Below, one piece after another: positions 42,270-50,500 of a stretch of DNA of 64,000 nt (position 1 is the first letter of the stretch; every line of letters begins with the position of its first letter). A program made the translations under genes and the position numbers. The notes beneath the pieces were generated by a model that made no database searches, had not been told where the DNA came from, and worked only from the letters and a program-made list of their open reading frames with translations. The DNA is from Magallana gigas (lineage: Eukaryota): contig NC_088859.1 in NCBI RefSeq assembly GCF_963853765.1, forward strand, positions 38,998,001-39,062,000, given 5' to 3'.

Positions 42270-45200
42270 ATGTCCAGGCACCGTAACGTACGGACAATGA
42301 ACTATGAGGATGGTATGTGGTCAAGTCTTTAAAATTGTTACATGTATGATACGATACCACTTAACGTTACTAAATGTGTTACTGCGACTGTTTGTCGAGC
42401 TGTAAAATGTTGTTTTAAAAACCACTCAAATTTTCATGAAATTGTAATTAACGGGTACACTACAACTTGCCCACTTGTTCACATGTACCCAACAGACCGA
42501 TTGGCAGTTTCATGCCTCAATGTCGATTTACCCAAAAGGTGAACAACCCCTATGTTATTATATAGGTTGGGACCAATCGCCCAAATGGGATATAATAACC
42601 CAAATGGGATATAAATTTTAAGTGCAAAAAATAAACTTTTTTGATATAAATCTGCATTAGAATAGATGTAATGCAACAACTTTTGGTAAACAACTTTTTC
42701 TGTTACGGAGATCGATCCCTCAGTATATCCAAAACTTCTTGGGGATCAATCTTACAAACTGTAGACACATAGAAAAACTTCTTATTGAAAAATTGTTGCA
42801 TTTGATACATATTAATGCAGATTTAAATCAAAAATTTAGAAACTAATTTTTTTTTATTTTTTGCACTTATGTCCCATTTGGGCTATTATAACCCAAACGG
42901 GCTATTATATCCCATTTGGGTGATTGGTCCCAACCTGTTATACATGTGGTCAGGGCATTATATAGAATTGTAAGCAACAGTTACTGTTTTATAATTCTTT
43001 GTCAGGTAGCTGTACTATTGAATTCTTTAATTATACTACAGTCTGTTCCAGGTTACTGTTTCAGTCGCTTTTTGACTATAATTATAACAAAAATACACTT
43101 AGTACGTAATTTTTGTGATGAGAAACTATCATATGCGAGAGTAAATCCTTACTGAGATTTATGATGGGAAATGTTTACATCTTTTTCCATTGGAAAGTAT
43201 TCGGGACACCTTGCACAATTTTCGACTATCATGTCTGTTGCAATGCAAAATCCCTGTAGACTTTCTATTTTTGTTTGTGTATTGAAACCTTTTACTCAGG
43301 TGTCCCTAAAAATGATTGACCTTTGTAGATTATCAGCTGATCTTTCCTTTTTACCTCCACAGATATCATCCATGTATTAAATTGGAATATATATGTACCA
43401 GTACTTGATATGTCAGTATGTCATTGTTATCAACCAGCAAGATGCTTTCAAAGATGGAAATTATATCCATGTATTGCTGTGAAACAAATTTATTAAGGAT
43501 TAATTATAATTTGCATTCCAAACTTACCTACTGCAGATTTATTTTTCAGAATATTTTGATGAAGATGAAGTCTATGGACATTCCTATGATGATAGCTACT
43601 GTGTCTCACCAGCCACAGGTACAGTAGAACATATAAACAAAATATATCAAAATTCAGGAAATTTAAATACATGTACCTTTGTGTAATTGAGAAAAAATTG
43701 AGTTTGTGAAATTTTTTAGCAGTAACATGTTAAAAGAACATTTGTTGCAGCTGCACAATTCACATTTAATCGAGAAAGAGATGTCAACTTGTCGTCCTAC
43801 ATGGAGGAGGGTATTCCCGAGGAGGAGGATGAAAGTGACCCAGAGCCCCTCAGTGAATCTGGGAGGGACAACCTCAAACTTAATGATGTTGAACAAGGTA
43901 AGCTCTGTAACAGCTTTTAAAAGTTCAGTCTGCATTTATTCCAATTTAACCATTGATACTAATGTAATAACAATTAGTTAGGAAACTAGTGAGGTGAATA
44001 AATTGCAAGATTATGCATGTATCTGGTCTATGTAATAAAAATAGCAATGATATGAACACTGTGAAGTTACTGTAAGTAAAGTTATTTTTATTGCAGCTAA
44101 ACTGAATTCCTGTAAAGAGGAAATAGTGAATGTGATAGGCGACACCATTCCAGAGCACATCGTGTCTCAGGCTGTGGTCAAACACCAATACAACATTCAA
44201 GCTGCATTGAATGAACTTCTGAATCAAAGTGGTAAATTAAGCATTTTTCAATTACATTATTGATATCAGCTCAAGAGGATTGTTTGTAAACAGTGATGGT
44301 TGTTTTAGATCTAAAACTTGAAATCATTTGATAATTTTCTGTTATTTTCTGCATTATATGAAAGCAAATGTCAACTCTAAGGGAGAGAAAGTTATGCTGT
44401 AATCTTTTAAGTGTCGTTGTAAAGTTCTGTTTGATTGTTTAAACAAATTTCTTAATACTGTGTGCAAGATCTTACCTACCGGTATATCAAATTCAGTACA
44501 TGTCAAATTTGTATGAATCAGTTTGATGTTACATTTAAATTGAATAACAATTTCATGAAATTTTGAGGCAAAATTATCAAAATTTTCTGGTAGTTATGAA
44601 TTCAATACATTGTATTTATAAATGTTGTATGATACATCGCAACTTTGGTCAGAAGGAGACGTTTCCACCTTTTCATTAACTTCGTCAATTATGTTATATC
44701 ATATAACATTAGTAAAAATTCAATCTATTCCTTAACTGCATATGTTGATATGGATGATTTTTTCTATGTTTACATTTTGTTTTTATTAGAGGCGCCTAAG
44801 CCACAAAGACAACCAAGGCCTGATAGGCGAGCAAACAGACAAGGTGACTATCTCCTCTCTGTAGACTCCATTAAATGATAAAAAATAGTACCGGTATCTT
44901 AAAAAGTGAATTAAATTTAAGTAACTTTATTTGGTATTATTCTCAGTAGTTGTTCTCCCGCACCTTTTTTCATCGCTTAACATTTTGCCCTCCTTTTTTT
45001 TCATGACCTCTCAACCTGTTGGTGATTGGCTGCATGTGTTGTTCTGCTTTCTGTCATCTCTTTGTTGAAAATGATGGTATTTTGCTGAAATATTTGGCGA
45101 TGGTAAGGTAAGATGAAGATGATGACTTTGATAGTTTTTTAGAATCATTAGAAGCTGATGATGGTGACACTAGCATATTTTCAAACTTAACTAAAATGTC

Positions 45201-47497
45201 ACCCAAAATTTTACATTTTGGCTCATCGCAGAATGTTGTTGAGAATAATTTGAAAACTGTAGAAACATTATCTCCCGAGAAATCAAACTCCACCGCGAAT
45301 GATTTTTGTGAACCCGCCAGACCATCATCCCAGTTAGCAAAAAAACATGAGGGAGCTCCACAGACACATAAAGGTCTGTTCCAAGGAGAGAGTACAGGTG
45401 AAAACAAGTCAAGAATATCACTTGCTCAATTAGCAGCTAAACGGAAACCATCATCATCTCTGGCACAACTGGCATTAGCTAAGAAAGGAGATTCTCTTGC
45501 TCAAATAACATCAGGACAGCAAAGTCAATCTGTAGCTCAGCCTGCAGGACAGAAGGTGTCTGTCTTAGATTCTGGACTTAAAGTTTTACCTCTAGCACAG
45601 CTAGCCAGTAAACACAAAGTTGGTACAAGTGTTGAAGAGAAGAAACCATCTTTAGCATTACTAGCAGCAAAACAGATGGAAACTTCTGAAGGAACCATGA
45701 TATCAAAATCCTCAGGAGTAAGTCTTGCTGATCTGGCAGCAAAAGAGACCAAAAACCAATCCATTCTAGGGAAGAAAGGAGCATCTTTAACACAATTATT
45801 AAACACCTCTAAAGAACTTCATCTGGAGAAATCCCCTAAGACATCTTTAGCACAACTAGCACAAAAACACAAACAAACATCCAATATAACTGCGACTGTG
45901 AACGAAAAATTTTCAAAGGAAAAATCTCTTGCTCAGTTGGCCCTGAAGCATAAAAATGAATCATGCACCGAGACTGATGTAGAACAAAAAGGAAAGGGAA
46001 TTTCTCTTGCTCAACTTGCATCAAAACACAAAACACCACTCAGTCAGTCTGGAATATCTCTAATGCAAGTTGCAAAACAAAAGGAAGAAAGAGAAACCGA
46101 AACAAAAAATGTTAGTCTGAGTGACCTAGTCAAACAAAACAAGGAGAAATCAAGTGACAGTGACAATCCACAATCCAAAGATGGACAGCAAGTTACTACA
46201 GTCAGTCAGCCTTCTGCCCAAGGGTTGTCACTTAGAGATTTAGTCAAAGAAAGGTCAGGCAATGTTTTGAAAGACAAATCAAAGAAAATTAAGCAATTGA
46301 AAGGGAATGATACTCAAACTGTAGACAGTAGGGAAGATTCTGATGTACTTCATGAAGGAAAAACTGCAGAAGATCTCGTCATTGAAAAGCTCAGTTTAGA
46401 TTTTGATGCTTTGGTAAACATCACAAAAGGGTCGTCTTGTTTTGGAAAAGTTATTTGTGGAAGGTTTGGAGCATTTAAAAATAAACTAAAAAATAATGAT
46501 TCCCCATCTCAGGGGCCATTTTCATATGCCAAACAAAAACAAATCACTTGTCATCATTCCCCAGAGCATCAGGTGAAATTAGTGCCATTTGATTTCTCAA
46601 CACCCTCCCCAGATGATATTATCAAAGAGAAGCAGAAGAGAGCATTCACACGCCCAAAAGAGAGAAATGATTCCAAATGAAAAAAGTTTCCTCTCAGGAA
46701 ATGAACTTTCTTCCTCCCATTTGTTTTTTGAATGATAAAAGCTTAGGAAATTATTAAATAAATTTATGAAAACATGATTAATGAATAAGGCATAATGTTT
46801 TTGGCAATAATGATGAACAATTTAGAAGTGATACCTGTACTAAATGTAATATAAGGTTGATCAAATCTTAATGCTAAGTCTTGTAAGAAATATATTAATG
46901 CAAACTATATGTTATTATGTATGAAGATGGTTTTTCTGATCACCAGAGTAAAAGTAATGAATTCAATCTCAAGATAAATTAGATAATAGCGATGTATATT
47001 TTGTAAATACTTTAAAGAGCATTCAACTATTTTTTGTAATTTTTAGAATTATACATACTTCATATTTCTCATGTTTTCATTGTTTTTATGTAATGTATTT
47101 ATAATTCTTTTGATAAATAAAGGCAGCTTTCATGTCCTGTTTTATGTAAATTCTTTGATTTGAGAGGAAGTATTTTAATGATTTAAGTATAATTTATCAT
47201 GGTAACAAAAATTAAATTCTACAAAAGTTCATAGTTTAGAGTGTTTCAGGGAAGTGTTTAATTACATGCACTGAGAGTTTCTCAATTTATAACCATAGAT
47301 TATTTGTTACATAATTTTTTTTTTATTAAGTTTTGAAGTAGTGCAACAAGTACTTGACTATTGCTTGAAAAAAACTATCAATTATTGACGAAGTTAATCC
47401 AAGTAAAATTGCACCCCAAGCTATTATATAACTTACATCCCCCCCCCCCAAAAAAAAGTGTCCTTTGCATATTATCATTTTTAGCTCACTTGAGCCA

Positions 47498-47529
<32 letters not shown>

Positions 47530-47545
47530 GTCCGTTGTCTGTCGG

Positions 47546-47591
<46 letters not shown>

Positions 47592-50500
47592 AAGAACCAC
47601 TGGGCAGATTTCAACCAAATTTGGCACACAGTACCACTAGGTGAAGGGGATTCAAGTTTGAGTTTGTTCAAATGAAGGGCCACGCCCTCTTTAAAGGGGA
47701 GATAATTGAGAATTATTGAAAATTTGATGGTATTTTTCAAAATCTTCTTCTCAAAAACTATTCGGCCTGAAAAGCTTAAACTTGTATGGAGGCATCCTCA
47801 GGTAGTGTAGATTCAAGTTTGTTCAAAGCATGGTCCCCGGGGGTAGGAAGGGGCCACAAGAGGGGGATCAAGTTTTACATAGGAATATATAGAGAAAATC
47901 TTTAAAAATCTTCTTCTAAAAAACTATTAGGCCAGGAAAGCTCAAATTAAAATGGAACCATCCTCAGTTAGTGTAGATTCAAGTTTGTTCAAATCATGGT
48001 CCCTGTGGGTAGGGTGGGGCCACAAGAGGGGGATCAAGTTTTACATAGGAATATATAGAGAAAATCTTTAAAAATCTTCTTCTCAAAAAACTATTAGGCC
48101 AGGAAAGCTCAATTTGGCGTGTAACCATCCTCAGATAATGTAGATTCAAGTTTATTCAAATCATGGTCCCTGGGGGTAGGGTGGGGCCATAATGGGGGAT
48201 GAATTTTTATATATAGAGAAAATCTTTAAAAATATTCTTCTCAAAACTATTAGGCCAGGAAGCACAAATTTGAGTGGAAGCATCCCCAGATCGTATAGAT
48301 TCAAGTTTGTTTAAATAATAGTCCAGGGGTAGGGTGAGGCCACAATGGGGGATGAATTTTTACATAGGAATATATAGAGAAAATCTTTAAAAATCTTCTT
48401 TATAAAGACTACTTGTCCAGAAAAGCTTAAACTTGTGTAGAGGCATCCTCGGGTAGTGTATATTCAAGTTTGCAAAATCACAGTCCCTAGTGGTAGGGCG
48501 GGGCCGTGATGGCGGTTTGAATTTTTACATAGGATTATATAGAGAAAATCTTTAAAAATATTCTGGGAAAGTTTTCGGTTCAAAACTCAGAACTTAGTGT
48601 GAAAGCACAGGTTATGCAGATTTAAGTTTGATGAAACCATGATTCCCTAGGGGCCACGAAATGGGGGGGTGGGGGGGATACATAGGAATAGAGACAAATC
48701 TTCTTACAGGTACAACAACAAAAGGGGCTTGGTATTTACCCCCAAAAAAGAGGTGGATAAAAATTGGCAGATTTTAATTTTTTTTTAGCAAGATCTACTG
48801 TACCTAGTTGTCAAGATATTTTGATACTGTGATGCTAATTTGATCAGAATTAAGGCAATTGTTGCTCAGCTGAGTGATGTGGCCCCTGGGCCTCTTGTTC
48901 TTTATTACTTCTAATTATTCTGCATAAGTGTATCAATGCTCCCTTGGAGACTGTTGAGGCTGAGTGACCTTTTCTATGATGGAAAACATATTTTTTCAGG
49001 ATATTGTATACAGGGTTATTTTGAATCAGCAATTGTTTGCTGATTTTTTTCAGAAAATCAATTTGAATGGTAATTTTGGCACTCATTTTTGTCTTATTAA
49101 TTTGTTGTGGTCACTAAAGGTAAGTAGAAGTGTTGGTGTGTAATTTTGGATATTTTTTAAATGTTGTGTTCATATAAGGGTTAGTTCATAGTAAGAACAA
49201 TTGATACATAAAAAAGAATTGTCCTATTTTTATTTTTCAATCAGAGTTTGCACCTGTTCAGCCCACTGTTCAATTAAAAACTCCAGTCAAGAAAAATACA
49301 ACCTCGGACTTAGCCCAAGCTACCTCTGCCACCTCACAAATAAAACTGGAAACCTCAAATCAGACTGTTAAATCTGCAAATAACTCAGAAACTGTGTTCG
49401 GTACTGAGAAGAATACTGTGAAAGACTTGCGCACAAAGGCAGGGAATCTAAATGCAAACAATGAAGTGGATGTCACAGACAGTGCAGTGTTAAATGATTC
49501 CAAACTTCAGGCAGTGAATTCTGAAATAGACCTAGTCGGAGACCTTGTTGGTAGGGACTTAGACACTCCAAGTAAATCATCTAGCAGCAGTGTTCCAGCA
49601 ACTCCCAAAAGTACTTCAAAGTAAGTCAGAACGATGGGATTGTATGGTACTGTTAAAGATACATGTACGTCTAAATCGTGTAGTAATTATATTACTAGCC
49701 ATATTGTGTCACAGAAATTTATTAAATTATTTAAAATTATATATTTATATGGTAATTATGTTCAAGTCTAAAGAATAATTATTGATACGATCTGAGTGAA
49801 ATATATAGAGTATAGTATTTCCTTTGATTGTGAAAATCATTGGAAGAGATAAATTGATATTGAGCAAGCTTTAGCATGCAAACCATAAAAGATCTGCAGT
49901 AGCATATGTACAACAAATAGATTCATCTTTATACTCAGAGATTCTTTGTGTTTATTTTATAGTTTATACAAAAAAATATTGAGATATATTGGCTTTCATT
50001 TGCATTTCTACATTCTTTAGAGTAAAACAAGACAAAGCCAAACTAAAGGAAGAATATGAAAGAAGAAAAACAGGCAAAGATCTTCTGAACTTGGTTGTCA
50101 TTGGTAAGTAGAAATGTCAACATTACTAGGTAGGTTATCTGTAGAAAACCATGCCTTAGATCATACACAGAATAGTGTATGATTCTTTCACCAGCATTGT
50201 CAGCTGGCAAATTCAAGACTGGGTGAATTCAAAACAATATTTAAGTAACTATGTTAATTAAAAAGAGAATCAATTTCTAACTGTGTGTGGGAGAAATCAA
50301 GACGTTATAAAACTGTTTGCAAGGGCGAAAAAACACAGGCTGAAATAACCCGTTACAGTAGTAGTATTAAACCATATCAGTAAGATCAGATAGTACCAAT
50401 AAATCTACCAATAAATTTCACAGGTCATGTGGATGCTGGTAAGAGTACATTGATGGGGCACCTGTTGTATCAGATGGGTGTGGTCAACAAGAGAGCCATG

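Follow-up and report, generated by a model that had tools for sequence, protein, structure and literature searches.

An old array of short motifs in the SKI7/HBS1L3 exon of oyster HBS1L, related by sequence to the SKI-binding region of human SKI7

We analysed a window of 64,000 nucleotides from the oyster Magallana gigas (NCBI RefSeq assembly GCF_963853765.1, contig NC_088859.1, forward-strand positions 38,998,001 to 39,062,000; positions below are counted from its first letter), which holds the HBS1L gene on the plus strand. One long open frame inside this gene is its alternative terminal exon, SKI7/HBS1L3, and this exon encodes thirteen clear copies of an S-L-x-x-[LIV] motif with a basic tail (consensus SLAQLAxKHK) together with one degenerate copy. 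Judged by alignment and spacing, the array is homologous to the fragment of human SKI7 that binds the SKI complex, and our preferred reading, to which we give a probability of about 0.6, is that the copies are helices that dock on SKI3, borne by a disordered arm that is anchored to the exosome at its opposite end.

The identity of the exon follows from its C-terminal part, which carries a Patch-4-like motif and a putative equivalent of the RxxxFxxxL motif, and from a phmmer match in which exon residues 284-516 align with the human SKI7 chain 9g8m_E (E = 2.9e-7). In published work the Patch-4-like motif, PFDFxxxSPDDIVKxNQ, contacts the exosome subunit CSL4, and the RxxxFxxxL 'Ski7-like' helix binds RRP43 (PMC5389692). 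At the oyster site aligned with the latter, the Phe and the hydrophobic residue are retained and Gly stands in place of Arg, the sister species reading RPSCFGKVI. An exact RxxxFxxxL just downstream was considered as the RRP43-motif homologue and rejected, because the alignment to human places the homologous motif three residues upstream of it. A conserved C-terminal helix follows the Patch-4-like motif, and this exosome-binding end is the most confident part of the structural model described below, with predicted local distance difference test (pLDDT) scores of 74-85. Together with its position inside HBS1L and its transcription, these motifs bear out the preliminary description of the exon, made from the letters of the window, as Ski7-like.

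In the canonical transcript the SKI7 exon is bypassed by an RNA joint from 44841(+2) to 49243 with GT..AG ends, and further joints were seen from 49620 to 50021 and from 50102 to 50423; the Pfam family HBS1_N is present in related full-length oyster proteins. For the alternative transcript, positions 44843 and 45113 join in frame, and the junction peptide is that of the NCBI models for Saccostrea echinata (isoform X2) and Ostrea edulis (isoform X3). Among the RNA joints listed there is no read across 44843 to 45113, and the junction rests on the frame and on these orthologous gene models. A sister-species contig (P0002) was examined as junction evidence and set aside, its layout appearing unspliced.

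The SKI7 exon is transcribed. RNA contigs cover 45131-46748 at a depth of 30-50, compared with 149 on the canonical exons, and in stranded poly(A) reads the depth on the SKI7 exon is comparable to that on the canonical exons, with an orientation that fits a plus-strand RNA provided that the libraries were stranded in the usual way. Cover by RNA ends at about 46750-46950. Unspliced contigs of low depth also run from exon 4 into the SKI7 exon (44816-45134, at 5.5-6.7 against 30-50 within the exon), one of them with a 16-nt deletion at 44883; we take these to be pre-mRNA, intron retention or carry-over of DNA.

The preliminary description had counted about 13-14 motif copies at 45322-46254, and this count stands: all 13 peptides that it listed lie in one frame, and the 14th, which we call copy 0, is degenerate here and a clean PLSQLAKKHK at the same position in the sister species. 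Copies start at irregular intervals of 12-38 residues, separated by linkers in which Ser, Lys, Glu, Gly and Thr are abundant. Patterning extends to the two residues before Ser1, mostly Gly followed by Ile, Val or Leu, and 11 of the 14 copies are of an Ala type, with Ala at position 6. In 20,000 shuffles of the protein, the loose pattern [SP]Lxx[LIV] occurred 1.6 times on average and never more than 8 times, compared with 13 observed; for the strict pattern SLx[QDL]L the average was 0.16 and the highest count 3, compared with 10 observed. No Pfam family matched the exon protein, as expected because the region is disordered.

Another way to view the array is through its DNA, which the same description had called diverged between copies under a kept peptide pattern. 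This holds. Tandem Repeats Finder found no tandem array at the DNA level, and the best pairwise repeats in the exon reach 60-80% identity over 29-41 nt at irregular spacing, matches that are imposed by the shared peptide. The 30-nt cores have a mean nucleotide identity between copies of 55%, Leu2 is encoded by CTT, TTA, CTG and CTA, and Ser1 by TCT, TCA and AGT, thus from both the TCN and the AGY boxes. The exon thus shows no recent duplication or head-to-tail tandem repeat of high nucleotide identity; the copies are old and their DNA has diverged. The back-translated SLAQLA pattern matched 45 times genome-wide, compared with 35 in the control, which is the level of background. The sole cluster of matches was five in the SKI7 exon; by this measure the genome contains neither another array nor a paralogue.

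In a ten-sequence oyster alignment, the M. gigas sequence is only 46-47% identical overall to those of Saccostrea, Ostrea and a C. virginica-like oyster, and the invariant columns of the array coincide with the motif cores in the four oyster genera. The ratio of nonsynonymous to synonymous substitution rates (dN/dS; Nei-Gojobori, against contigs of four relatives) is 0.23-0.39 in the motif cores, 0.5-0.7 in the linkers and 0.08-0.25 in the exosome-binding end. Core conservation and the lower core ratio agree with the earlier suggestion of protein-level selection, which, on this comparison of orthologues, is acting on the copies.

Table 1. Features of the HBS1L locus in the window (positions count from the first letter of the window; a slash marks the exon boundary).
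Feature	Position	Strand	Basis or remark
HBS1 N-domain exons	~42270-42311, 43540-43905, 44096-44230, 44789-44843	+	tblastn with oyster proteins
HBS1L exon 4, last common to both isoforms	44789..44843	+	donor CAAG/GTGACT after 44843; tblastn, frame/phase
Open frame	45112-46680	+	522 codons, stop at end
SKI7/HBS1L3 alternative terminal exon	45113..46680	+	acceptor AG 45111-45112, stop 46678-46680
14-copy array	45322..46257	+	(G-hydrophobic)-S-L-[AS]-[QDE]-L-[AV]-x-K-H-K
Copy 0, degenerate	45322..45351	+	above threshold of position-specific scoring matrix
Copies 1-3	45418..45522	+	first residues 45418, 45457, 45493; tightly packed, 13 and 12 residues apart
Copies 4-9	45589..45954	+	first residues 45589, 45649, 45721, 45784, 45844, 45925; cores invariant or nearly so across oyster genera
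Terminal module, copies 10-13	46003..46257	+	first residues 46003, 46057, 46114, 46228; spacing +18, +19, +38 residues
Copy 12 (SLSDLVKQ)	46114..46143	+	positional equivalent of human helix H2
Putative equivalent of human 'Ski7-like' RxxxFxxxL	46426..46455	+	aligned to human RPSAFASTL, conserved among oysters
Second, exact RxxxFxxxL (RFGAFKNKL)	46462-46488	+	3 residues downstream of aligned motif
Patch-4-like motif	46585..46635	+	fits PFDFxxxSPDDIVKxNQ; columns invariant; aligns with human 9g8m_E
Poly(A) signal ATTAAATAAA	46753..46762	+	
Canonical HBS1L exon 5, used on SKI7-exon skipping	49243..49620	+	RNA joints
GTPase-domain exons	50423..51300	+	GHVDAGKST 50423, DAPGH 50743, GGQTREH 51022, NKMD 51252; motif scan, splice joints

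AlphaFold2, run with the ten-sequence oyster alignment, gave a mean pLDDT of 41 and mostly coil; of the 13 clear copies, 10 bear a short helix (residues 104-110, 117-125, 162-165, 181-186, 246-252, 274-278, 299-304, 317-327, 336-342 and 374-377, each on a copy). The model thus supports the beads-on-a-string picture of the preliminary description, in which the array would be a disordered chain bearing short helices. Within a copy, Ser1 would be the helix N-cap and Gln, Asp or Glu at position 4 would complete a capping box, the hydrophobic residue before Ser1 and Leu5 would form a hydrophobic staple, and Leu2, Leu5 and the position-6 residue would share one face of the helix. Capping boxes and hydrophobic staples are part of general knowledge of helix capping, from which this reading comes.

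The link to SKI binding comes from human SKI7. A fragment of the human protein, 372-546, binds SKI238, and in cryo-EM structures a helix (451-464) lies in a cleft of SKI3, between TPR 29 and 30, and is anchored there by Leu454 and Ile458; the double mutation L454D/I458D abolishes binding, to which a second helix, predicted in the region 430-465, 'made no substantial contribution' (PMC11540850). By our alignments, human S453-L454-S-E-L-I458 is a copy of the motif, its two anchors falling at positions 2 and 6. The only copy within human residues 430-450 is SLSSLAFHK at 434, which we take on that account to be the second helix, H1, and further copies lie at 375, 414 and 490; the human numbering was verified on the 632-aa chimpanzee isoform X3. 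With a profile built from 78 non-human copies, the top two of 177,635 PDB sequences were the two chains of human SKI7 (E = 0.0075 for the 372-546 construct and 0.065), and in the construct the profile matched S375, P414, S434 and S453. A single good match to the motif also occurs in a chain of Xrn1, another mRNA-decay enzyme (3pie_A, 759-771, GISLSDLAKRH, E ~1), and is most likely due to chance.

Copies 10-13 of the oyster (residues 298, 316, 335 and 373) are colinear with human P414, S434 (H1), S453 (H2) and D490, at spacings of 18/19/38 compared with 20/19/37, and the spacing of this module recurs in Saccostrea, the C. virginica-like oyster and sharks. In the alignment, copy 12 (SLSDLVKQ) is paired with the human H2 sequence SLSELIAE(TI), which puts oyster Leu336 and Val340 in the places of human Leu454 and Ile458. 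Because of this colinear alignment and spacing, copy 12 is likely the main anchor.

The two proteins (human structures PDB 9G8M-9G8R) are alike in being encoded by an alternative terminal HBS1L exon, in their C-terminal exosome motifs, the RxxxFxxxL element of the oyster being a putative one, and in carrying copies of the motif, which in the SKI-binding fragment of human SKI7 lie at all five positions named above. They differ in that 14 copies pass our threshold in the oyster and 3 in human, and in that the oyster copies are far more regular and mostly have Ala at position 6. Binding is demonstrated for human SKI7, for which the literature that we read describes one binding and one predicted helix rather than a repeat family (PMC11540850), and would extend to the oyster by homology. 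The gene is the orthologue of a known adaptor and its motif includes a known ligand helix.

We used an exhaustive profile search to follow the array across animals, which returned 310 SKI7-like representatives; copies were counted in 127 non-redundant proteins that have the Patch-4-like motif. The median is 5 copies per protein (interquartile range 3-7, maximum 18), and at least 13 copies occur in 9 of the 127. By the same threshold there are 13-14 copies in the window, 15 in Saccostrea, 12 in Ostrea, 11 in the C. virginica-like oyster, 6-9 in abalone, 5 in scallop, 7 in the sponge Halichondria, 6 in whale shark and 3 in chimpanzee and human (5-7 by eye). A homology search restricted to the C-terminal 108 residues added the scallop protein alone, and some lineages have young, near-identical tandem copies (P0052, P0109). 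From these counts, the sponge included, the array dates to early animals, with oysters in the upper tail and not unique; other lineages have expanded it further. The idea of an expansion in the oyster therefore survives in part: its copy number is high, but multi-copy arrays are the rule in animal SKI7.

Some of the gene models met in this search are of interest for exon layout. P0042, the 327-aa protein of the sponge Halichondria panicea that has 7 copies and ends in a Patch-4-like motif, has been annotated on its own as an 'uncharacterized protein'; it may represent a SKI7 exon that went unrecognised, or else a gene apart. In echinoderms, models from Patiria miniata (P0108, 1344 aa), Diadema (P0150, 1258 aa) and Antedon (P0143, P0208) hold the SKI7 region together with the full GTPase, and in P0108 and P0150 the matched stretch continues up to the last part of the profile, which contains the Patch-4-like motif. 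The SKI7 exon of echinoderms would then be internal rather than terminal, as in plants and fungi.

SKI7 is the adaptor that links the RNA exosome of the cytoplasm to the helicase complex SKI2-SKI3-SKI8. Under our preferred reading, the array is its SKI-binding arm in the oyster, an intrinsically disordered chain with 14 short amphipathic helices of a single motif family. At its C-terminus the exon product would be held on the exosome by the RxxxFxxxL-like and Patch-4-like motifs, and each copy would, by homology with human, dock its Leu2 and position-6 residue in an inter-TPR groove on the outer surface of SKI3. Copies 10-13 would make up the fixed-spacing module shared with vertebrates, with copy 12 as the H2-equivalent anchor, and the nine or ten upstream copies would be extra, weaker docking sites that raise the local concentration or avidity for SKI3, or hold more than one SKI complex. 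A role in SKI binding had already been suggested in the preliminary description, and it remains the best reading, given that the human SKI3-binding helix is a motif copy aligned with oyster copy 12. We infer SKI3 binding in the oyster and the contribution of the upstream copies, the latter with less assurance for those of the Ala type. As for the partner itself, a search of the genome with Pfam TPR_22 (PF18833) gave no match, and TPR_16 gave 41 scattered matches; of two candidate SKI3 exons that were set aside, one may, judged by eye, be Hop/STIP1-like, and PDB matches to the other were confined to generic TPR proteins.

Several observations weigh against extending the docking role to the whole array. 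In human SKI7 only H2, with Ile6 and Glu4, is a major determinant and the Ala-type H1 is minor, and, as we read the constructs, fragments 136-277 and 267-386 were made and tested and only 372-546 is named as binding SKI238 (PMC11540850); most of the oyster copies share the Ala type of human H1. The dN/dS of the cores is about half the linker value, not near zero, and a conserved His9, kept from sponge to primates in Ala-type copies, is unexplained by the H2 contact as described, and may point to a second site or partner. The human data and the conserved His9 would be accommodated if the array had two functions, such that only copies 10-13, chiefly copies 12 and 13 with Asp or Glu at position 4 and Val or Ile at position 6, bind SKI3, and the upstream SLAQLAxKH copies recognise another groove of the ~40-repeat SKI3, SKI8, SKI2, the 40S subunit or a further factor. 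Consistent with such a division, the copy nearest the exosome end is mildly enriched in Val, Ile, Leu or Met at position 6 (34% compared with 21%) and in acidic residues at position 4 (62% compared with 45%), and yeast Ski7 places three helices on three Ski3 sites (PMC10659929). Yet both types share the same core and intergrade (SLADLIEEH, SLSELAKQK), the human SKI-binding fragment holds both, and no other partner is known; we consider a division of this kind the main rival to our reading, though rather unlikely.

The copies might also have no specific partner, and act as transient helices that tune how long and how stiff the link is from the 40S-binding N-domain to the exosome-binding end, or as weak 'stickers' for self-association and condensates. 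Disorder of the region, copy numbers from 0 to 18 between lineages and the young tandem copies of some of them would fit a spacer or sticker. What makes it improbable is that Ser1, Leu2, Leu5, Ala or Val6 and His9 are kept from sponge to primates, that one copy is a proven SKI3 ligand, and that the spacing of the last copies is conserved from oysters to vertebrates, for which a spacer would have no need. As for a chance or low-complexity artefact in a non-coding frame, the failure to match Pfam is all that speaks for it, and the shuffle tests, RNA cover, purifying selection and orthologues in four oyster genera, scallop, abalone, sponge, sharks and primates leave it scarcely credible.

Yeast Ski7 provides a second comparison. 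Its residues 1-12 form helix H1, with Leu4 and Ile12 in a pocket of Ski3 (Keidel et al. 2023, PMC10659929), and in all three different helices occupy three different Ski3 sites (PMC10659929); yeast and human Ski3-Ski7 contacts are reported to have diverged in structure and sequence (PMC11540850). Like the arm proposed for the oyster, yeast Ski7 (PDB 8QCB) is disordered with several short helices anchored by Leu or Ile, and its helices H1-H3 dock inter-repeat grooves on the convex surface of Ski3 (TPRs 20-29) with weak, salt-sensitive affinity; unlike the oyster, the arm is the N-terminus of a GTPase-like protein and its three helices are mutually dissimilar. The preliminary description had likened the motif to the yeast N-terminus, given there as MSLLEQLARKR; of residues 1-12, the paper bears out only Leu4 and Ile12. 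That this part of yeast Ski7 binds Ski3 proved correct, but the resemblance, about 6 of 9 residues in one register, found no confirmation: the motif profile did not match yeast Ski7 among all PDB chains at E <= 10, nor did phmmer with the oyster exon against the PDB, and a text search for the yeast sequence found no paper. As an analogy only, the tryptophan motifs of GW182/TNRC6, which bind CCR4-NOT and PAN3, are likewise many weak motifs on a disordered chain that gain avidity for a folded helical-repeat partner and vary in copy number between lineages; the sequences, partners and pathway are unrelated to those of oyster SKI7.

Taking these results further, we suggest, as a tentative and on balance doubtful generalisation, that an array of SKI3-docking helices of variable number (0-18) is general in animal SKI7 and was expanded independently in several lineages including oysters, and that in oysters it may also enter a GTPase-bearing HBS1L isoform through an internal donor after copy 10. 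The NCBI model of Crassostrea virginica isoform X2 (P0030, 1039 aa) runs from the N-domain through the SKI7 exon to the equivalent of copy 10 (...SLAQLAGKQKMSI) and from there into canonical exon 5 and the GTPase domains. It would be a third isoform, with most of the array and without the exosome motifs. In the window there is a phase-compatible candidate donor, CTCA/GTCAGT after 46042, that would yield ...KHKTPL-K-FAPVQ, and among the RNA joints listed none supports it. If the generalisation is true, copy number would determine the number of SKI complexes that an exosome can hold on collided ribosomes, or the tightness of its hold on a single one, and an array-bearing GTPase isoform would give the ribosome-rescue factor a SKI-recruiting arm of its own.

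The significance of the array lies mainly outside the oyster, for which this is ordinary annotation of a housekeeping RNA-decay adaptor. Structures of the SKI7-SKI link date only from 2023-2024; in them human SKI7 is described as using a single main helix and yeast Ski7 three dissimilar ones, reported to be diverged past recognition (PMC11540850, PMC10659929). Our alignments place the human helix in a repeat family with a clear consensus, from sponges to primates, that includes a four-copy module of fixed spacing common to molluscs and vertebrates; they suggest that there is a reason why the 'non-contributing' human helices have been conserved. The consensus offers a simple sequence signature for finding SKI-binding arms, and the natural variants with 0-18 copies are material for asking whether valency tunes exosome-ribosome coupling. 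In the literature that we searched, there was no description of its repeat-family nature, consensus, antiquity or variable copy number, although an earlier one may exist.

Two further stretches of the exon, upstream of the array, are kept across oyster genera: an acidic segment with a predicted helix at the exon start (45113-45170) and an SPKIL(H/K)FGSSP patch (45199-45240). The intron 3' of the SKI7 exon contains a non-coding interspersed repeat (47450-48950) with internal repeat structure, which has many genomic copies at ~91% identity (7717 candidates at a first look), very high RNA cover and many chimeric joints.

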